Shown: in pieces, positions 5,549 through 57,121 of the stretch | Layout of the letters: each line of letters opens with the position of its first letter | How positions within the stretch are numbered: the stretch's first letter is position 1 | NCBI RefSeq assembly: GCF_001194135.2 | Contig: NC_068983.1 | Location: 109,566,032 to 109,630,031, forward strand | Source: Octopus bimaculoides | Taxonomy: Eukaryota | Direction of reading: 5' to 3' | Length of the DNA: 64,000 nt | The notes under the pieces: model-generated | Told to the model about the DNA's origin: nothing | Databases searched by the model: none | What the model saw: the letters and a program-made list of their open reading frames with translations, nothing else | Translations under genes and position numbers: made by a program

Positions 5549-6553
5549 ATGGAAAATAAGAAAATGGCATCAACAAGCTATTATGAGGGACTGCTGAATG
5601 TGGAGAATGCATGGGATAAAGAGGAGGTACTTCATGCTAACCCTACAAAGAGACCAGTAATTCAAGTTGACAATGATGTAGTAGCTAAAGTAATTGAAGG
5701 CATGAAGAGAGCAAAATCTACAGGTCCATCAGTGATTGTTGCAGAGAAGCTTAATATCTGGTGTAGTGGGATACATGATCACCATTTGGATAGTGAATTA
5801 AGTTACACAAGAAGGTACCATACTCAATGACTGGCATAGCAGAATCATTGTAAACAAAGGCAAAGGAGATGTCTTAAAAAGAGGAAATTATAGACAAATG
5901 AAACTAATGGATAAGATTATGAAGGTCATGGAGAGACCTTCATAACACAATTGGTCCATTAGAAAGTAGACTTAAATGACATGCAGTTTGGCTTAGTAGC
6001 CATAAGAGGAATCATGGATGCAATCTTCCTATTGAGGCAACTGCAGGGAAAATATTTACCTAAGAGTAAACCACTACTTCTGACACTCATTGACTTAAAG
6101 AAGGTATTTGATAGAATACCCTGCTCAGTAACTTAGTGGTGAGTAAGGAAGATCAGAGTAGATGAATGGCATGTGATGGCAGTATAAGTCATGTACAAAG
6201 ATGAAGTGAGTAAAGTAAGAGTTAACGATTATTTCAGTGATGAATTTAATGTGAGGGTAGGAGTATGTCATAGAACAACTTTCACTTCTCTCCTATTCGT
6301 CATAGTCCAACAGGCCATTGCAGAATTTAAGACTTGTTGTCAGTGGGAACTCCAATATACTGATGATTTAGTTCTCATAACTCAATATACAGGCACTATC
6401 ATGGCTGTGTGGTAAGAAGCTTGCTTCCCAACCACATGGTTCTGGGTTCAGTCTTACTGCATGGCACCTTGGGCAAGTGACTTCTACTATAGCTTCAGGC
6501 CGACCAAAACCTTGTGAGTAGATTTGGTAGACAGGAACTCATAGAAGCCCGTC

Positions 6554-6618
<65 letters not shown>

Positions 6619-8440
6619 TATAAATTGAATAAATAGAGTCATATGACAACCGATGTTAGTGTGTTTACGTCCCCATAATTTAGCAGTTTGGCAAAAAAAT
6701 ATGTCCTGGGGTCGAATAGTTTGACTAAAAGGTGGTGCTCCAGCATGGCAATAGTCAAATGTCTGAAACAAGTAAAAGAATAAAAGAATAGAGGGAAATT
6801 AGAGAAATGATTCCAAGTATAGAAGCTAAAACAATAATTCAAAGACCACAAAATAAACTTAGCAAAGACAACGGTTTCTTTAAATAGGAAAGAATTCAGA
6901 AACCTGGTATTTTCAGAGAAATGACTTTATGCAATTTCCAGGAATGGAATCGGTATAAGCTACATACATTGTACTCAATGTAAGTTATGAGCACACAATA
7001 GGTGTAGTGAAACTACAAACAGACTAAAAGACAAAGCAAACTTCCTATGTGACAGATGCACTGGAGTAGCATGTACTATGAGCACATCAAAAATATATTC
7101 TCTTAAATGTTCAGATGGCTCACTAGAAATAATTGATAGCTTTTGTTATCTTAGAGATGAAATTTGGAGGGGAGTGGATGCTCTGAGAATATAGTAACTA
7201 AATATAGTAACAGGATGAAAAAATTCAGGAATCTACTCCTATAGCTGGAAACAAAGTTCCTTTCCCTCAAAGTGAAGGGCAGATTGTCTGGCACTTTCAT
7301 TAGCACTTCAACACTACATGATGGTGAAACATGGGCCTTGAATGCAGAGGGCTTCAAAAATCTAGAAAGAAATGAAGCAAGCATACTTTAAGACATCCCC
7401 TACTACTCATCATTTCCAAAATTGCAGTACTTTATCACTGTAATTAAATGTCAGAAGAACTGCATGTTTAACCAACTTTTCACAAGTATCACTTATCTTT
7501 CTCACTACACAAAACCATCTCACTAATTATCCATCTTTCATTCATAATACAGATCTCTCCAACCACATTTTACATTGCTCACTTTCCTAATTCATTACAA
7601 TGTCTCTCCTCCACCACTAAAGCATCTCTTACTCTCCTCATTTACTATGCCTGTCTCTCACACCATACTCTTGCAACTTACCCAACCACAAGTCATCTCT
7701 CTCATCTTCTTTCAACTTTTCTCTATCTACTGCATCACTGCTATGATTTTGCTGATCTACACTATCAATCATCATCTACACTGCTTTACATCCCTCCAAC
7801 TCATACATATCATTGTCATTTCACTATCCTCCATTTACTATACCTATCCCTTAACTCTACTCAGTTTTTACAGTAGTCACCTTCTCTTCCCTACATATCA
7901 TCTCTTAACATTTATACATCATTACATTAATCCACCATCTATTTCCCATCTAAGCTCTCTCTCTCCCGTATTCTTGCAACTTTTACCTACCCAGACTCCC
8001 TCTTCTCTTCTCCCCTCTCATTTCTGTTCATCTCATACCACCCAGACACCTCATTCTCACTACTCTTATATCTTTCAAGCTCCAACTCAGCCACTCCCAC
8101 CCTCCATTCTATAACATGTGTAGCCACATAACTCCTGTATGTAAGAAACCTGTTCCTGCCTATTTTCTCAGATCTTTACTACTGATCTCCTAGCATAAAG
8201 CTGCCTCTCTCACTGCTGTAGTCACTTTCAGTCCAATGGGATCTTAATCTTGCAAGCTATATGGCAACTTCACTAGTGATAGTGTTATAAAAATAAAAAT
8301 AAAAACCTAGAGAATGCAGTTAGGTGAGTGGGATTAAAAAGGGTATCCAGTCATAGAAATCATGCCAAAGCAGAGATGATGCAAGTCATAATTTGATGAG
8401 TCGTGTCAAACCATCCGACCCATGCCAGTATGGAACATGG
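5549..8440 (+). mobile_element. Decayed RTE-clade LINE (RT domain, long G-poor 3' UTR, conserved tail), split by a SINE
   Basis: Translates with stops and frameshifts to KGKGDVLKRGNYR, MQFGL...DAIFLLRQLQ, IDLKKVFDRIP, ELQYTDDLVLI (YADD motif), INLAKT, FCYL and HDGETWAL. Tail at 8300-8440. Confidence 0.9.
6392..6790 (+). mobile_element. tRNA-headed SINE family A with an internal (TA)n tract, nested in the RT
   Basis: Head GGCTGTGTGGTAAGAAGCTTGCTTCCCAACCACATGGTTCTGGGTTCAGTC, central (TA)n at 6555-6620, and tail ending (AAAAGAAT)2. Same family as 19896-20325 and 57836-57985. Confidence 0.9.
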
Positions 8441-45651: not shown

Positions 45652-45790
45652 TGATTGTGAGGTTGCTTTAGCACTCTGTTGCATTATGAGTATGGTTCTT
45701 CCCATGAGTGTGGTTCTTCACTAGTTTCTAAACAAGGTAATAACCCCCCTCAGTCTATCCAGCAATGAACAACCCAAATATACTTTTGCA

Positions 45791-45935
45791 GTGGGAGATA
45801 ATGCAAAAACATTAGCTCCAATATGTTGGTCATCAAAACAAGTGGATCATGTAATGAAGAATCAGTTGAATTTTGAAATTTTTGCTCGTAGTGAAGTGGT
45901 TGGCACTGGTGTTTTAGTAGCTGCTGCGATGCAAA
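45791..45935 (+). repeat. Isolated 145-bp copy of the RNase H segment at 49224-49365
   Basis: Five substitutions and one 3-bp indel relative to 49224-49365. Confidence 0.95.
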
Positions 45936-46494
45936 TAACTGGCACAATACCATATGTACAAAGGGAGATGCTATATTTTTAATCAATGCACATAGAGGAA
46001 GACAAGGGGAATATAACGCACTAACATGCACACACATAAATGTGTGTGTATATATACATATGCACACACATATACTCGAAATGGGATGGCTATGGAATGA
46101 GATGTATTTGACTCTCTTGTTATGTTGGTATTGAGGTTTTATTTACTACCCTCTTATCATTACCTTTGCCTATCAATCATCCTCTCTCCTACTTCCTGTT
46201 CTAAGCCACCTTGTTATCAAAGGGTAGGCTAGATCTATCTGTACTGAATCTTTACCATGTATCATACCCTGTCATTATTCTTTTTCAACACCACACCAAT
46301 GTAACAATGTTGACATTCAAGCCATATATATGCAATGGACCATTGCAAGATGACATTCTGTTTTACTTTTGCTGCTAACCATAATCTTATTTACCATGCT
46401 GACCAATATCTCATAAGTGAATGTGGAAAACAGAAACTTAGTGGAAGATAATCGTGGATGTATGTATGTATATATGGGTGTGTGTGGGTGTGTT

Positions 46495-47769: not shown

Positions 47770-49450
47770 GCAGTCACAAGTCCTGGATTCCGAACCATTG
47801 ATGCCACTGCTAGATATTCTGCTGCTAGATTACTTACTCAAAACAAATAAAATGGAAGAGATCATTAGGAAAGCAATGAAGAAAATTCTAGAAAGACAGA
47901 AATGTAAGATAGTCCTGACATGGATTGTTCATGTGAACAAGACACTCCAGAATTATTCAGGTTATACTCCTAATGAACTTGTTTTTGGCCCTAATTTTAA
48001 TGTACTATCAGTTCAGAATTACCAGTTACTTACTCTGAAATCTACAACAACTAGGTGACATGGTTAAGTGTACTTCATATGCAAAAAATAGTTTCATCAA
48101 AGCTGAGGCTAGTGCAAATATAAAGAGAGCACTGAGGGCTAAAATAAGGATTTACATAGATGAAAATTTTGTGCTAGTAACCAGATCTCTTACAAAACAC
48201 AAAACGTTAAAGGATGGTGTGGTCCTTCAATTAAATAGGCATGCAGGAACAATGCTTTCATGTCAAATGATGAAGTTGGGATAAAAGAGCCTAAAAGAAG
48301 TATGGAAGTTATTACAGTAGCGAATGAATTGTATGAAGGTGTATCTAATGAGAAAAACGAACCTTTTGATAAAGAAGAAATTAGTAGCAATGAAGCTAAT
48401 GATATGAATGTTTAAAAGGCAAAACTGAAAAACCAGGCAGGAACAACAAGGTTGAATATAACATGAATGAATGTGAGAAATGAAAAAGAAGATAAAACTA
48501 TGATTAGACAACCAAAGTCAAAAAGGAAACTACAATTTTTGGATGAATATAATACCAAAAGGGGAGAATAAATATTCTACTTGTGGTAACTGGGATCATG
48601 AAAATCAGTGGGGACAAGTTACTCGGGAAGTAGGTGCACATTAACATGCAATTTTACTCACTGTAACGAAAGAACAGGGAAAAGCTGTAATTGATGCAAA
48701 GCATAAAGTAATATAAAATATAATGAATCATGCTGTATTTGAATGTCTACCCTACATAGGTAAAGAAGGAGTGATTACTGAAAAACACAGAATAATAATA
48801 AAAAGATAATGAAGACTTATTGTGTTGCACAGGATCATGAGGAATATGCAAGTGATCTAAAAACGGACTCTCCAACATATAGCCATGAAGTCATAGTTAA
48901 TAGTGTTAATTAATCAGTAATGTTTTGGAGTGCAGACTCTTGATTTCCTCTAAGCAGTTTTTGCAGGGTGATATATTGATGAGGGAACTGTTCCTTAAAT
49001 AACCTTCAGATATATGTCCAAAGTTGCAGGCATGAAAGTTGAAGAGATGCGTCTCAATCATGATATAAGAAGGTTACTCAATTACTGATCAAAGTAGGGA
49101 GAGTAGTGAATGTTTATGACAATACTTTATTTCTCTGGTTCATTATTCTAGTTATTGATTCAAGCATTGATGGGTATTCTGGCAATGAATATGGATGAGT
49201 TTATGGGTCGTTTTATCATACTTGTGGGAGATAATGCAAAAAAATTAGCTCCAATATGTTGGTCATCAAAACAAGTGGATCATGTAATGAAGAATCAGTC
49301 GAATTTGGAAATTTTTGCTCGTAGTGAAGTGGTTGGCATTGGTGTTTTAGCTGCTGTGATGCAAAAGATATTTCAGCTGCCCAGATTGCAAGAAGAGATC
49401 TGCAAAACTGACAATTCATCATTTGCAGAAACTTTAAATGAATCTCATCT
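47770..49450 (+). mobile_element. Decayed Ty1/Copia-like pol remnant (integrase end, RT, RNase H)
   Basis: Domain order IN-RT-RH. IN: TLQNYSGYTPNELVFGPN, FIKAEASANIKRALRAKIR. RT start: NHAVFECL...VITEK. RH: LAPICWSSKQV...LEIFA...KTDNSS. No LTRs found. Confidence 0.75.
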
Positions 49451-50099
49451 ACATGTACACATATACATATGTATATAGATATACATAAAGATACATATGT
49501 ATATACACATATATATGTATGTACATACATACACACACACATATATATATGAATGTATAAAAATATATATATGCACACTTGTATAAAAATATATATACAT
49601 ACTATATATATATATGTATATATGCATACACACACATGTATAAAAATATATATGCACACACTATATATAAATACACACATACATATACACATGCATATAT
49701 ACACACTCATACATACATTGGCAGAATAATGTGTATATAAGTGCAACAGCTCCACCACTACTATTTTGTCCTCTAGATATTTCCACCACCCATTATTTCT
49801 CTAACTGCAGCATTCTTCTGCTGTAATTAGATCTGAGTAGTACTGCATGTTTTGCTAGGTTTTTTTTTTTTTATTGATACCACTTATCCTTCTAACTACT
49901 TGAATATTTCATTTGTTATCTATTGTTTATTCCTAATACTTTTCTCACCACCCACATTTTACATTGATCACCTTCAACCACATGTACTGCTCTCTCTCTC
50001 TCTCTCTCTCAACCTTCCTCCTGTCTATTGAGCCATTGTTACTCTTTCTGCACTATCAGTCATTTCTTACTCTTTCTCACTGCTACCCTAACTCATAGT

Positions 50100-50147
50100 C
50101 TGTAACTGATGAGGAGATAGCTACTCTGAAATACTAGCATCTCACAG
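50100..50147 (+). ncRNA. Minimal type I hammerhead ribozyme motif, slightly decayed
   Basis: Stem I CTGTAA(50100-105)/TCACAG(50142-147) with 1 mismatch; CTGATGA (50106-112); stem II GGAG/CTCT with loop ATAGCTA; GAAA (50128-131); stem III TACTAGCA; ATC, with cleavage predicted after 50141. Confidence 0.75.
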
Positions 50148-50439
50148 TCTTGGAAGATGGTGCTGCAAGCTGATCTAGGTGTATACACACCCTTTGTCAA
50201 CAAGTGAAATTATATTCTCCATGACAAAATGTAGTGAATAGCTTGTTCCCCAGTTCGAATGTGCATCAAGAATACTTGAACTGATAATAACATTGCATTT
50301 TTTTTTCTTATCACTGCTTACCATTTCTCCTCTGTAATCTACTTACAACAAGCCACTGTATAGTGCTACCAGTCATCATACAGTGACTGGAAAAGTATAA
50401 GAGAGGTAATATCTTTATTCAGCTCATAGTGTCATCCGC

Positions 50440-50487
50440 CTGTGACCAATGAGAAGATAACTACTCGAAAATGCTAGCATCTCACAA
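50440..50487 (+). ncRNA. Second, more degenerate hammerhead copy
   Basis: Colinear with copy 1 at +340. Stem I CTGTGA/TCACAA and a perfect palindrome TGCTAGCA, but the core is mutated to CCAATGA. Confidence 0.55.
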
Positions 50488-53419
50488 TCTAGGTAGATAG
50501 CACTGCGAGATGGTCTAGGTGTATTCACACCATTTGTCAACAAGTGAGATATATTTTCTGTGACAAAACACTGAGTAGCTTGTTTCCCAGTTCGAACATG
50601 CCCCAAGCATATTTGGCCTGATAATAACATTGCAAGCTAACTCATAGTAACACTGGTCACTTCTTATTCATTTCTTCACTATATCCACCTCTCAACCCTG
50701 CTCAGTTTCCACTGTTGTCTCCAACTCTTTTCTATCTTCCTTACTTACCACTCCATCACATCTACTCTTCATTATATTTTCTCTTTCACTCATTCTTTAT
50801 CTCTAATGAGAGGTTCTTAGAACTTCTGCCTATCTGCACTCTGTCTTCCTGCCTCCACTCAATTGTATTCCTCTCATACCTCCAATATCCACCCTGACAC
50901 CACATCATGATAGTATCTCTTACCAGCTCAATCCAGGTCACACACACTACTTTTGTTGTAATATGAGTTGCGATGTAACTTCTCTACATCAAGAAACTTA
51001 TTCAGTTCTGGGCCCTTCTTTCATACCTCACAGCTCCTAGCATAAAGATGCTTCCTCTCTACTGTAGCCATACCCAGTGAAAGGGATCTTAGTCATACAA
51101 GCTGCACGGTATCCCCATTAGTGTTTGTCAATGCTGCAAAGTGGTTGGTATTAGGAAGAACATCCAACTGTAGAAACATGTCAAAACAGATACTGGATTA
51201 TAATGCAGTCCTCAAATCAAAAAGGATTGTATCAAACCCTCTTAACCATGAAAACATAGAAGAGGGACATTGAATGATGATGATGATGCTTAGCCATAGT
51301 AGTACCAAAAATCAATTGCTGGAATTCAATACACTTATACTTCACAATAATAAAAATGTACTCCAGTGTGGCATTATGAATTGCGGGACATTCTTTGCTC
51401 TGGACTCTTACATGCATATGTATGAGTGTGTGTGTGTGTGTGTGTGTCCTAATATGATGAATGAGCATTGTGTGTATCTGATTTTTGTTAATTTTTGTTC
51501 TGAATTATTGTAAGGAAAAATTCTGTTGAATGAAAACAATTTGGAAAAATTGTATTGAAAATTTTCCCAGCCATTTTATTTATATGTTAATAACAGCAGA
51601 CTGCAGCTGAATTCCTTGATAAGTTTTTGATCTATTAACCCAAAGATTTGCATTTTTTTCCCCAATAGTATCAATCTGCTGCACCCAGTTCCAGCATTTC
51701 TTTTGAAGAAAATATTCTCTCTCCCCAAAAGCACTTATTTTATGCTTCATCAATTTATGTGTTGCTAGGATTTTTTGAAGTGATATTTCTTTTAACAATA
51801 ACTGCTAAATGTCTGAAGTTTTCCACACTGACATAAAACAATTTTATTCACAATGAGATGGAGTATTGTTTTATTCTGTATGTAGCCAAAAAAATAACAG
51901 CTCAAATTAGATTCTATTATGCTGTAAATTATTTTATTTACCCCGCTAGAATTAATGACTGTAATGCATTCAAGCATAAACTTTTTTCTAAATCTGTCTA
52001 TTTAGAAATCTTATGATATTTAATATATACTTGTCAAAGATTTCCTAAAATATATATTTGCACATATATATTCATGAATTGAGAAGATATAATTACCAGC
52101 ATACTACAAGCTAAGGAAAGATGCTTTTCTTAAGCCTGATTATACTACATCAGCTCCTGCTCTTATGAACAAATAAGCTGCATAACTTTTCTATTTAAGC
52201 TTACTCAACCATCTCCCACCTAATTCATCATTCCTTTGTTTCACTCATCATAATATTTTTGCAGTCACCCTATCTTAGAGCTGTAGTTCCTTAGAATTTT
52301 TTAACCATCAACATTTGTTTACATGTGTAAACCCACAGAAGCTTTGATCTTAACAGTAACCACATCAATTTCCCAAGTCTGAGAGAGCTACACGTGTTTG
52401 AGTTGCAGAACTTCACTTATGTCTTATAAAAAATTATATCTAAATAAACTAAAGACTAAAGGTAACTATATTCTAAAAAATGGTTATTATAAATTTATTT
52501 TCAAAGTAAGAGAATGTGAGTGCAAGAAAGATAAGATTATTCATTCATTGAAAAAATTAAAAACTTGACAAATTTTCTTTAAATATAAACATACAAGATT
52601 TATATGAATGTATTAAAATTCTTTAAAAACTAAAAGAACTTTTGAAACAATCAAAAAAGAGTTTTACTTGGATACTGTGAGATGTTTGAGAGAGGCAATG
52701 TGAAGATAGAAGACTGAGTCATGGATAAACAAAACTTGAACGTTGCCCTTGTTCCCACAACAATGCAGCTGCTCATGTTCACTACTTATCCATACCTTTT
52801 TTAACAAAGCAAGAACTTACATTCATTCTCAGCCACTAAACCCCACAGATTTAGTTCATACAGAACTCTATGTTTTCAAAGTTGAAATCTACCCAGAATG
52901 CTAATCTCAGATGAGAAAAAATACAAAAGAAAATTTAAAATGAGAACTTTGCACTACCCATGAAAATGCATTTCAAGGTACATTCCAATATTGGAGAAAG
53001 CATTGGCTATGCTGTATCAGTGAAAACAATACTTTTTTAAGGCAATAAGTCTGAATAAACTGTAAGTCAAGCAACAAATTTGTCTTTTAAAAATTCAATT
53101 TTAGTTTAGATAGACCTCATATTTTTATGTAGACATCATTTGCTATAATTCAAAATATTTCATTTAATAGTTTGCAAATTATTTCTAAACTTTTCATAAA
53201 ATTGTAACACATTTAGGGAAAATGTTTTAATTTTCATGTAATATGAAACAGGATATTACTGTTTTTTTTTTGTTTTTCTTTTTGAGAAGCAACAATAGTG
53301 TGTACTTCCTAATCTGATCAATTTATAACTTTAATATGCAAAGATTAGCAAGTTTTCTTAACACTAACTAATGTATTTATTTTTTCAATTTATTTAAAAA
53401 AATAATAATGATAATTTTA

Positions 53420-54554: not shown

Positions 54555-56132
54555 AGGAAATTCCAGGTATGGAAGCTAAACCTAGAATCAAGAAGTCTTT
54601 ATGTAAAATTAGCAAAGATGAAAGTTTTAGAAAATAGAAGAGAAAACAGGACGCTGGTATCCTCAGAAAGAGGACCTCACTTGATATGCAGAAAAAAAAG
54701 AAGGTATAAACTCCATACACAATGTAAGTTATGAACACACAAGTGTATTAGAATCACAGCCAAACTAACAGAGAAAGTAAATTTCATTTGTGAAAAATGC
54801 ACTGAAGCAGTACACACTATGAGCACAATGGAAATAGCTTATCTTAAATGCCCAGATAATTAACTTGAAATAGTCAAAAGATTTTGTTACCTTAGAGAAA
54901 TAATTATTAGGAGGGGTAGATGCTGAGAAAGTATAGTAGTCAGAGCAAAAAAGGGTTGAAAACAGTTCAGGGAACTATTAAAGCTACTGGCAAAAATGTT
55001 TTGTTTTTTTTCCCCTCAGCATGAAGGACAGATTATATGATACTTGTATTGCAATTACCATAAATGTTGACAGGCAAGGGCCTTCAATGTAAGGGAATTG
55101 AGAAGTCTAATAAGAAATGAAGCTAACATACTCCATTGGATATGCAATGTAAGTGTGCATCAATGACATAATACAAATATACTGAGAGAAAAAAGTGGGT
55201 ATAAGATGAATCAGTTGTAGTGTGTAAGAAAGAAGACTGCACTTGTGATGCATATGGATGAGGACAACTTCATGTAGAAGAGCTGACCATTTAATGAGGG
55301 TGGAGCTTGCAGAAGAGGGAGAACAAAAATGACATGGGACAGAATGGTGAAGGCCCTTGAATCTCAGGGAAGAGATAACAAGAGATCAGGATGATTAATG
55401 GTGTGCGATTCTTGAGAAAACTCACCTAACTCAGCAAAACTAAATTCTGGAAGTGTTGTGTACGTATATATATATATGTGTGTGGGGGGGGGAAGAAAGT
55501 GAGAGCAGTGTGCATTCTCACACACCACCCCTAATCACTCTACAGCATCTGGCTGCCATCTATTAGCTCCTTGATCCACTCCTACTTCCTCTACTTTCCA
55601 CTCCAAAAGCTATTCGTGATTGACCTTACTACCACCCATGTTTATCATTTACTACATCTTTCACTATCTACCTGCCACTCACCTCTCATATTCCCATGAA
55701 CTTACCTATCCATAGCACTCCTCTTCATTCACCTTCATGTAACGTGAGGGTATGCCCTGACACATCTTCACCACTGTTCCACTCCTCTTTCAACTGAGAT
55801 AACCATGTATCTCTCCAACAAAAAGACACTTGTTCTTGTAACCCATCATACTTTAACATCTCATCACCTGGCATAAAAGCACCTCCTCCAATACGAATCT
55901 CCCACCTCAGTCGAGAATTCATGTCTTGTGAGTTACTGGGTGGCCTCACTAGTGATGGCGCCACATAAAAAGTACCAAGTGCACTCTGTAAAGTGGTTGG
56001 CATTTGGAAGGGCAGCCAGCCATAGAAACCATACCAAAGCAAACACTGAAGCTTGACTCAGTTTTCTGGTTCATCAGCCCGTTGACTCATCTGACCCATC
56101 CCAGCATTGAAAACATAGGCTAAATGATGATA
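54555..56132 (+). mobile_element. RTE LINE 3' portion (RT end with Cys-rich insert, C-terminus, 3' UTR, tail)
   Basis: KFQVWKLNLESRSLYVKLAKMKV, QCKL*THKC...FICEKC, FCYL; tail ending AAATGATGAT. Confidence 0.85.
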
Positions 56133-56139
56133 AGGAGGA

Positions 56140-57121
56140 GGCCGCTATATGCTGGGACTATTGAACAATTACCTTGCCAAGACCCTCACCACCCTTCCAT
56201 TTCATTAATTGAGGTTTTCCTTTCATACCATGAACCATTTCACTTGATATCAATACCTCATCCTTAGTACTGTCCCCTACATGCACATTTTACATTGCTC
56301 CTCACCCCAGAGACACCATATCGTCTCACCTTCTCAATAATCTTATGTCTCTTACACTCCCCATGCACTACATGTCTCTCTTCCCACATATTCTTGTACC
56401 TACCTAATGATTTGTCCTCTTTCTTTCTCTTTCACCTTTCCAACATCTAAACTATCATCATTACATTTCTGCTACCCATCATCACTGTTTATTCCCACCC
56501 CTTGTCCACGATTCACAACATCTACCCCAAAACCACACCCAGTCTATACAGTTCTCACCTACTCTTCCCTTCAATCCCTAATTATTGACTCAACACTTGT
56601 TCTTCATTATATTCAACACTTGTTCTTCATTATATTCAACACTTCATACATTCTCCTTCTCTCACTCAGTCATAACTCTTGCAGCCTCTACCCACCCTCA
56701 CTCCTAGTTCGCCTCCATTCACTTCACTTCACTTACCTCATACCTTGAGAGTTTGTATAGACACCTCAACATGCCTTTTTTAATCTCTTTCCTAGTCCAC
56801 GAGACTCATCCCCCACCAACTCTTCAAAAATTGAAGTAGCTATTCCTCTATAGTTCCTAATCTCATACTTTAACCCTTCATCTTCTCTCATAAAACCAGC
56901 TCTCTTGGGGTTCGTAGCAGTATGGTGATCTTATTAATGCTAGTGACATGACAAAATGACCCAGTGCATGCTGTAAAGTGGTTGGTATTAGCAAGGGCAT
57001 CCGGCCTTAGAAACAATGCCAAACAGTGCTAGTGAGTGATGCAGTCCATAGACCCAATAGATCTAACGAGACCAACCTTGCCAGCATGAAACAAGTGATG
57101 ATGATGATGATGATGATGATG
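56140..57121 (+). mobile_element. Adjacent RTE-type 3' UTR and tail with a (GAT)n end; contains a 23-bp tandem duplication at 56590-56644
   Basis: Tail GTAAAGTGGTTGGTATTAGCAAGGGCATCCGGCC...CAGCATGAAAC(GAT)n. Confidence 0.75.

Follow-up and report, generated by a model that had tools for sequence, protein, structure and literature searches.

What is the hammerhead-like sequence at positions 50100–50147 of the 64,000-nucleotide stretch of contig NC_068983.1 analysed here (the window), and how did it come to lie inside an older repeat? The original prediction had read it as a near-intact minimal type I hammerhead ribozyme hidden in the 3' untranslated region (UTR) of a long interspersed nuclear element (LINE). 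We found that it forms the start of a 537-bp insertion (50100–50636; 1.6 units, GC 38.9%), which most likely represents a decayed copy, 5'-truncated to a 1.6-mer, of a head-to-tail repeat of ~340-bp units that carries a type I hammerhead and is either of the kind of the non-LTR retrozymes (LTR, long terminal repeat) or derived from the pseudo-LTRs (pLTRs) of Penelope-like elements (PLEs). The decisive support for the hammerhead identity comes from sequence comparison: a homologous second copy lies 340 bp away and the same architecture occurs at three other loci.

All hammerhead elements stand at 50100–50147 in the proper order, and the letters, CTGTAA-CTGATGA-GGAG-ATAGCTA-CTCT-GAAA-TACTAGCA-TC-TCACAG, are exactly those described originally. 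The parts of this first copy are as follows.

50100–50147, plus strand: hammerhead copy 1, supported by the only descriptor match and the family alignment
50100–50105 with 50142–50147, plus strand: helix I, CTGTAA with TCACAG, 5 of 6 pairs, A·C mismatch at 50104
50106–50112, plus strand: core CTGATGA (CUGAUGA in RNA)
50113–50127, plus strand: helix II, GGAG (50113–50116) with CTCT (50124–50127) around the loop ATAGCTA
50128–50131, plus strand: GAAA
50132–50139, plus strand: helix III segment TACTAGCA
A50131–U50140 and U50132–A50139, plus strand: helix III pairs
50140–50141, plus strand: T16.1 and C17

The invariant core of copy 1 is complete (C3, U4, G5, A6, U7, G8, A9; G12, A13, A14; A15.1–U16.1; C17) and runs in type I order, with the predicted cleavage site 3' of C50141, after AUC. 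Helix II has four pairs, its closing pair 10.1–11.1 being a G·U wobble instead of the conserved G10.1–C11.1, and helix III has two (A–U and U–A), the next position being an A·C mismatch within the near-palindrome UACUAGCA. The 5' strand of an outer stem that belongs to the family is missing from copy 1 because the insertion starts exactly at helix I. A helix I of 6 bp, a helix II of 4 bp and a short palindromic helix III correspond to the canonical metazoan type I architecture rather than to the minimal hammerhead of PLEs (PMC4209133), and we therefore dropped the label "minimal" that it had been given.

We scored the locus with a strict descriptor that demanded the exact core, a 4-bp helix II, A15.1–U16.1 and one further pair, H17, and at least 5 of 6 helix I pairs. 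The sole match in the window was 50100–50147, and none occurred in 400 first-order Markov simulations of 64-kb sequences scanned on both strands; the analytic chance expectation was ~1.4e-3 per window. The core pattern without pairing yielded 1 match against 1.4 expected in the window, which is not significant. As ~1.4e-3 per window translates into tens of chance matches in a Gb-sized genome, the case for a hammerhead rests on context and on relatives.

The context is a tandem unit. Two hammerhead-headed segments of ~198 bp, 50100–50297 and 50440–50634, are 81% identical and lie 340 bp apart, and a family profile found only these two copies in the window. The second hammerhead reads CTGTGA CCAATGA GAAG ATAACTA CTCG AAAA TGCTAGCA TC TCACAA. 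Its core has lost U4, G5 and G12 (U4C and G5A in CCAATGA, G12A in AAAA) and thus no longer has the full set of type I invariant nucleotides, and it shows a G·G apposition at 10.1/11.1, but it keeps helix I, and its helix III segment TGCTAGCA is a perfect palindrome. The short helix III together with this palindrome bears out the earlier view of the locus as a relic of a type I hammerhead that depended on dimers. The remainder of the array is laid out as follows.

50148–50297, plus strand: body of unit 1, 81% identical to 50488–50634, conserved in the related loci L122, L123 and L127, ending in AACATTGCA
50298–50439, plus strand: spacer of the unit (142 bp), conserved in the same three loci
50298–50306, plus strand: T9 run in the spacer directly after unit 1, not conserved in the relatives
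About 50422–50439, plus strand: 3' end of the spacer, which supplies the 5' strand of the outer stem around helix I of copy 2
50440–50487, plus strand: hammerhead copy 2, inactivated, identified by homology to copy 1 and the family alignment
50488–50636, plus strand: body of unit 2, ending in AACATTGCA(AG) directly at the right target-site duplication

Since the spacer is conserved in L122, L123 and L127, we assign it to the element rather than to the host, and the true unit therefore comprises hammerhead, body and spacer, ~340 bp long and repeated head to tail. An origin of the spacer as a duplicated host flank was rejected on the same ground, the flank alignments being in addition not significant (p = 0.11–0.47).

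The relatives were found through a 70-codon minus-strand open frame of copy 2, whose translation was used in an exhaustive HMMER search. This returned three short predicted "proteins" (P0004, P0005 and P0006) that are translations of the same repeat; for instance, ...DCEIRAFRCIYLLLGH... results when the hammerhead is read in reverse complement. Their contigs, L122, L123 and L127, come from Logan assemblies of runs SRR11869384-94. All three carry the same hammerhead, body and spacer in the order body-spacer-hammerhead-body, their flanks are unrelated, and the unit alone is shared among the four loci that they form with the window. At L127, about 2.7 units follow each other with a period of 335–336 bp; L123 is a 1.4-mer, made of a 5'-truncated body, spacer, hammerhead and body, and is flanked by a 15-nt direct repeat of 87% identity; L122 holds one unit with spacer sequence on both sides. 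Six hammerheads could thus be aligned, two from the window (copies 1 and 2), one each from L122 and L123, and two from L127 (L127a and L127b).

Copy 1: CTGTAA CTGATGA GGAG..CTCT GAAA TACTAGCA TC TCACAG
Copy 2: CTGTGA CCAATGA GAAG..CTCG AAAA TGCTAGCA TC TCACAA
L122: TTGTGA CCGAGGA GAAG..CACC GAAA TGCCCTTA TC TCACAG
L123: TTGTGA CGAATGG GAGG..TTCC GAAA TGCTAGCA GC TCACAG
L127b: CAGTGA CTGATGA GGTG(3-nt deletion)TTT GAAA TCTTAACA TT TCACCG
L127a: core unrecognisable; helix III TGATATCA

Across the six copies, 78.7% of the cells of the hammerhead model were paired, compared to 23–52% in register-shifted controls, with the highest fraction in helix I (86%), followed by helix III (80%) and helix II (65%). 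The central pair of the palindrome showed compensatory changes in two copies (C–G to A–U and C–G to U–A), and GAAA was retained in 4 of the 6. RNAalifold independently recovered helix I together with an outer stem of ~15 bp, formed by the 3' end of the spacer with the 5' start of the body. This stem encloses helix I (50405–50439 with 50488–50525) and carries a few compensatory changes, for example GGUGCCAUCUGC/GGUAGGUGGCGCU in L122 and AGUGUCGUCUGC/GGUAGGUGACACU in L127b; with the stem included, 80.3% of the cells were paired, a value that 25 of 500 shuffles reached. The strict descriptor was passed by copy 1 only, and L127b passed a relaxed one. As read from the alignment, all six hammerheads are decayed.

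The relatives also bear on how the array arose. It is unlikely that the element inserted as a single unit and became a dimer through later local tandem duplication. The two window units are indeed each other's closest relatives, at a whole-unit distance of 0.19 compared to 0.24–0.43 to the other copies, which speaks for such a duplication. Against it, the spacer is element sequence and the order body-spacer-hammerhead-body recurs at L122, L123 and L127, so that multimers are a property of the family. The conclusion on what the element is stays unchanged under either model. The same distances, by making the two window copies sisters, led us to discard a split of the family into A and B subfamilies by core states.

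Whether the window copy could still cleave is a separate matter. The minimum free energy (MFE) structure of the copy 1 monomer (−8.1 kcal/mol) is an alternative 9-bp helix that pairs loop 2 with the helix III and cleavage-site region, whereas the hammerhead fold evaluates to +4.0 kcal/mol. A double hammerhead of copy 1 with itself reaches −1.2 kcal/mol against a cofold MFE of −22.2, and one of copy 1 with copy 2 reaches −8.4 against −20.1. By contrast, the consensus reconstructed in the original prediction pairs in all helices of its double hammerhead, at −32.6 kcal/mol compared to a cofold MFE of −33.7, so that a dimeric hammerhead fold is expected of the reconstructed ancestor but not of the extant copies. 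We accordingly give little credence to the notion that copy 1, by itself or together with copy 2, can still cleave itself and serves a function in a host transcript today. Copy 1 does retain every invariant core nucleotide and the AUC site, and helix II reaches four pairs when the G·U is counted. However, the hammerhead folds lie far above their competitors, G10.1–C11.1 has become G·U, A·C mismatches interrupt helices I and III, copy 1 has no 5' strand for the outer stem, copy 2 lacks U4, G5 and G12, and the divergence is neutral. Based on these folding models, self-cleavage of the window copy appears very unlikely. The description "near-intact" thus holds for the core but not for the rest: weakening affects each of the three helices, copy 1 lacks the outer stem, the energies predict an unstable hammerhead fold, and Rfam gives no match.

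The route of decay can be read from the alignment. Copies 1 and 2 differ at nine hammerhead sites, 8 of them by transitions. At 7 of the 9, the outgroups L122, L123 and L127b back the allele chosen when the two copies were originally combined into a fully paired consensus, while U4 and 10.2 remain ambiguous; that reconstruction is thus largely borne out, and without circularity. The C at 11.1 is backed by the outgroups (CCGAAA in L122 and L123) and retained in neither window copy, and the wobble at this position in copy 1 corresponds to a CpG-to-TpG product. The window copies are poor in CpG (1 and 3) compared to about eleven in L122. At core positions 3–5, copy 1 has CTG and copy 2 has CCA, which are the two decay products expected from CCG, the state of L122. 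The intact CUGAUGA of copy 1 may therefore be secondary. Taken together, the comparison identifies the window copy as a relic that decayed neutrally, to a large extent via CpG transitions.

We next consider the insertion itself, whose borders and surroundings are listed here.

49785–50087, plus strand: host repeat, left part, homologous to 7402–7586
50088–50099: left copy of the target-site duplication, CTAACTCATAGT, an exact 12-bp direct repeat
50637–50648: right copy of the target-site duplication, CTAACTCATAGT, 100% identity, spacing 549
50649–51103, plus strand: host repeat, right part, homologous to 8187–8258 and 56968–57023

The 12-bp target-site duplication (TSD) is the only terminal repeat of the insertion, which has no LTRs. 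Non-microsatellite 12-mers of the window recur at the TSD distance at only 0.16% of positions, and the probability that a 12-bp duplication stays perfect at the divergence of the two window units, about 8%, is acceptable. Both flanks are parts of an older CT-rich repeat, of which paralogs lie at 7402–8258 and 56237–57023. When the block is removed, the locus aligns collinearly with 7376–8360 across the junction at 65% identity, and the paralog shows, at about 7700, a single CCAACTCATACA at the junction position, which represents the empty site. The hammerhead block is a separate nested insertion and not part of the LINE-like repeat.

The placement in a LINE 3' UTR, as originally proposed, gave way to a TSD-flanked insertion nested in the repeat, and it is most improbable that the hammerhead was part of a LINE 3' UTR itself and was carried along by the LINE. 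What speaks for it is that the hammerhead lies on the same strand within the CT-rich repeat and that the paralog 7402–8258 follows, on the same strand, a weak reverse transcriptase (RT) remnant at 5963–6133 (plus strand; RVT_1, E=5.6e-4, below the curated cut-off), which makes a "LINE-like 3' region" plausible for the host repeat. However, the unit is absent from the paralogous copies 7376–8360 and 56090–57120, 12 bp of host sequence are duplicated exactly at its two borders, and it occurs at three other loci with unrelated flanks, and these points already largely refute such an origin. Degraded RT-like frames were also seen at 6188–6412 and 6991–7388, likewise upstream of this paralog, with a YTDDLVLI motif noted by eye among the RT-like frames; this fits a LINE whose 3' region hosts the insertion.

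It is hardly credible that copy 1 resembles a hammerhead by chance within AT-rich repeat DNA: while the core-only pattern is expected by chance, Rfam gives no match, the monomer MFE is a different fold and CUGAUGA could be recreated by a CpG-to-TpG change from CCGAUGA (CCG in L122), the full descriptor is expected only about 1e-3 times per window with no match in the 400 simulations, helix I, GAAA, the palindromic helix III, the AUC site and an outer stem are preserved in five further homologous copies, and known hammerhead repeats share the tandem ~340-bp organisation (PMC7229834).

Several results weigh against our interpretation of the block as a decayed hammerhead repeat and have to be set beside the evidence above. 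The search with the Rfam hammerhead models that had been proposed as a check gave no match in the window at the gathering score, none even at E<=10 on sub-windows of 801 and 81 nt, and none in the related loci. CUGAUGA is intact in only 2 of the 6 copies, and the majority state at U4 is C, so that catalysis may already have been impaired (U4C) in the direct parent of the window dimer. The hammerhead was not visibly favoured over the rest of the element: between copies 1 and 2 it diverges by 18.8% compared to 20.5% for the rest of the unit, and across the family its mean pairwise identity is 64% compared to 67–76% for the body. Among the six decayed copies, 2–5 pairs show double changes and covariation does not exceed that of shuffles; similarly, the 341-nt unit is barely more structured than shuffled sequences (z = −1.9). 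Finally, no RT or GIY-YIG domain appeared in Pfam scans of translated fragments that covered part of 45.5–57 kb.

The Rfam searches of the window, the two sub-windows and the related loci returned solely weak look-alikes of C/D small nucleolar RNAs (snoRNAs), at 9–12 bits, and microRNA noise. The former arise because CUGAUGA...CUGA mimics the C and D boxes. C/D box snoRNAs carry a C box (RUGAUGA) and a D box (CUGA) at the ends of a 60–100-nt RNA with a terminal stem; here, the boxes lie 15 nt apart and the scores fall below gathering scores of 37–54 bits, and we rejected this candidate.

For the decayed multimer that we favour, we suggest the following mode of spread. In a multimeric transcript, neighbouring hammerheads would pair via the palindrome AUGCUAGCAU into a double hammerhead, and each would cut 3' of AUC to release unit-length RNAs of ~340 nt, which a host ligase might circularise. 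An RT supplied in trans, possibly that of a PLE or a LINE, would copy the RNA by target-primed reverse transcription that starts preferentially at one 3' position (...AACATTGCA), and the outcome would be variably 5'-truncated multimers with target duplications of 9–15 bp. The window copy would have landed in the older LINE-like 3' region and then decayed neutrally. The array ends are of interest in this respect. Within the unit, the arrays of the window and of L123 stop at one and the same position (AACATTGCA and AACATCG, respectively), directly at their TSDs, and those of L122 and L127 run about 45–55 nt further into the spacer. Two arrays with a shared 3' end, together with two whose ends are ~50 nt longer, might point to a fixed internal start of reverse transcription, similar to the "tail" of PLEs. 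A start of the L127 array exactly at the cleavage site was considered and rejected, as the 20 nt upstream still resemble a decayed 3' half of a hammerhead (about 70%, by eye).

Other features of the unit were noted along the way. The best-conserved stretch of the family, ATCTAGGTGTATACACACC..TTTGTCAACAAGTG (50173–50206, and again at 50513–50545), follows the pattern ATCTAGGTGTATACACACC(N)TTTGTCAACAAG(Y)G and, at 76% mean pairwise identity, exceeds the hammerhead (64%). A small hairpin (GGTGT-ATAC-ACACC) lies within this stretch, which might serve as a recognition site for a protein or an RT, or as a promoter element. The 8-mer CTCATAGT at 50423–50430, 9 nt upstream of copy 2, is native to the element (CAGCTCATGGTG in L122, CGGCTCCTAGTG in L127) and matches exactly the final 8 nt of the 12-bp host TSD adjoining copy 1; the match may be fortuitous (roughly 0.05 across the entire insert), or it may hint at microhomology or a target preference. 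At 50252–50259, and again at 50589–50596, the family-conserved AGTTCGAA resembles an RNA polymerase III (Pol III) B box (GGTTCGAA). Beside it we found neither an A box nor a tRNA-like fold, and an origin from a tRNA-derived short interspersed nuclear element (SINE) is unsupported, as ARAGORN detected no tRNA-like gene or sequence.

Beyond the four loci, direct DNA pattern scans gave no matches in viral contigs and none for the hammerhead pattern in metagenome contigs; a 17-mer matched metagenome contigs more than 120 times, all by chance. The only match of the family hammerhead pattern in a prokaryotic genome (L121, 5315–5351, minus strand, in a Saprospiraceae metagenome-assembled genome) pairs in neither helix I nor helix II and was likewise dismissed as chance. 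A word-indexed protein search with the 70-aa minus-strand open reading frame (ORF) found nothing. Three long ORFs made of near-identical tandem repeats of 53–57 aa (P0001, P0002 and P0003) show weak similarity to the translated hammerhead region (in P0001, for example, ...PRVSSSAIRREMDMFDLRSSCFILGHQK; the back-translation of P0001 is ambiguous) and may represent other tandem hammerhead repeats of about 160–170 nt.

Elsewhere in the window, an interspersed repeat occurs in two copies, 45725–45979 and 49152–49475 (plus strand), one of them just upstream of the host repeat, with translations of the form ...VGDNAK.LAPICWSSKQVDHVMKNQ.N.EIFARSEVVG.GVL.... At 84–1650, a satellite with a period of 61–62 bp, interrupted by an assembly gap (N run, 647–1531), produces long spurious ORFs on both strands. 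Pfam searches of concatenated translations (about 5.4–8.1, 46.5–49.5, 52.6–55.4 and 59.6–60.1 kb) returned nothing at E<=0.01.

What does this locus add? Type I hammerhead repeats, or retrozymes, are already known across animals including molluscs, and one decayed copy changes little. The work does define a previously unlisted ~340-bp family by its unit, its outer stem and its arrays at four loci, a definition that can be used for annotation, for masking and for searching the source genome for young copies that may be active and produce circular RNA. The window offers a clean case of a multimer that is truncated at its 5' end and has both an exact TSD and a paralog with the empty site, complemented by the 3' end that two loci share, and the truncation, the TSD and the shared ends bear on how retrozymes are reverse transcribed and integrated. 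As CpG decay can both destroy and apparently restore a hammerhead core, ribozyme calls that rely on the motif alone call for caution. If our interpretation is right and younger intact copies exist elsewhere in the genome, the family could still yield abundant circular RNAs of ~340 nt, and it would provide a natural system that links the mobilisation of retrozymes to a specific PLE-type enzyme. Our literature search found no description of hammerheads or retrozymes in cephalopods, nor of the sequence family of the window. It is nonetheless a tentative proposal, and one that we consider rather doubtful, that a retrozyme family new to the literature has here been seen for the first time in this, possibly cephalopod, lineage, its units measuring ~340 nt and its type I hammerhead depending on dimers.

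Among known systems, the family compares most directly with the non-LTR retrozymes of metazoans, whose hallmarks are type I hammerheads in head-to-tail repeats, from dimers to multimers, low GC content, the absence of LTRs and the presence of TSDs (PMC7229834). In these elements (newt satellite 2, axolotl Rtz_331/353, mussel and coral), each unit of about 170–450 bp has one type I hammerhead (PMC7229834), and the ~340-bp unit of the window falls within this range. The head-to-tail organisation recurs here as the 340-bp spacing, the ~2.7 units of L127 and the 1.4-mer of L123. The low GC content (39%), the lack of an LTR, primer-binding site or polypurine tract, the TSD longer than 4 bp, and the dispersal of copies with different flanks (four loci and an empty-site paralog) agree as well, as do the short helix III, the palindromic loop that implies dimeric action, and the embedding of the hammerhead in a long self-paired stem. 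Unlike the described non-LTR retrozymes, all six hammerhead copies seen here are decayed.

PLEs, the proposed evolutionary source of animal retrozymes, provide the second comparison (PMC4209133, PMC8557442, PMC11167929), and retrozymes have recently been argued to derive from PLE pLTRs (bioRxiv 10.64898/2026.07.22.740005). As in the hammerheads of PLE pLTRs (PMC4209133, PMC8557442, PMC11167929), we find a dimer-requiring hammerhead and insertions that are partially tandem and variably truncated at the 5' end, and the 3' extension of 45–55 nt at L122 and L127 is possibly the counterpart of the 30–40-bp PLE "tail". The minimal PLE hammerhead has no helix III and a long bulged helix II (PMC4209133), whereas the window family has an unbulged 4-bp helix II, a helix III of 2–3 bp and a palindromic loop; the inferred ancestor, with a 4-bp helix II and a 3-bp helix III closed by a palindromic tetraloop, would be canonical. 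In contrast to PLEs, no ORF with RT and GIY-YIG was detected between or near the units in the translated fragments scanned from part of 45.5–57 kb, and the 537-bp insertion has no room for one. A third relative in organisation is Sm-alpha of Schistosoma, reportedly (Ferbeyre et al. 1998) a SINE-like hammerhead repeat with a type I hammerhead, a unit of ~335 bp and both dispersed and tandem copies. Its ribozyme is active, Pol III A and B boxes are present in it, and it is a lophotrochozoan example like the mussel retrozymes. The window family differs in showing only the B-box-like AGTTCGAA, and it resembles Sm-alpha in its ~340-bp type I hammerhead unit that is both dispersed and arranged in tandem.

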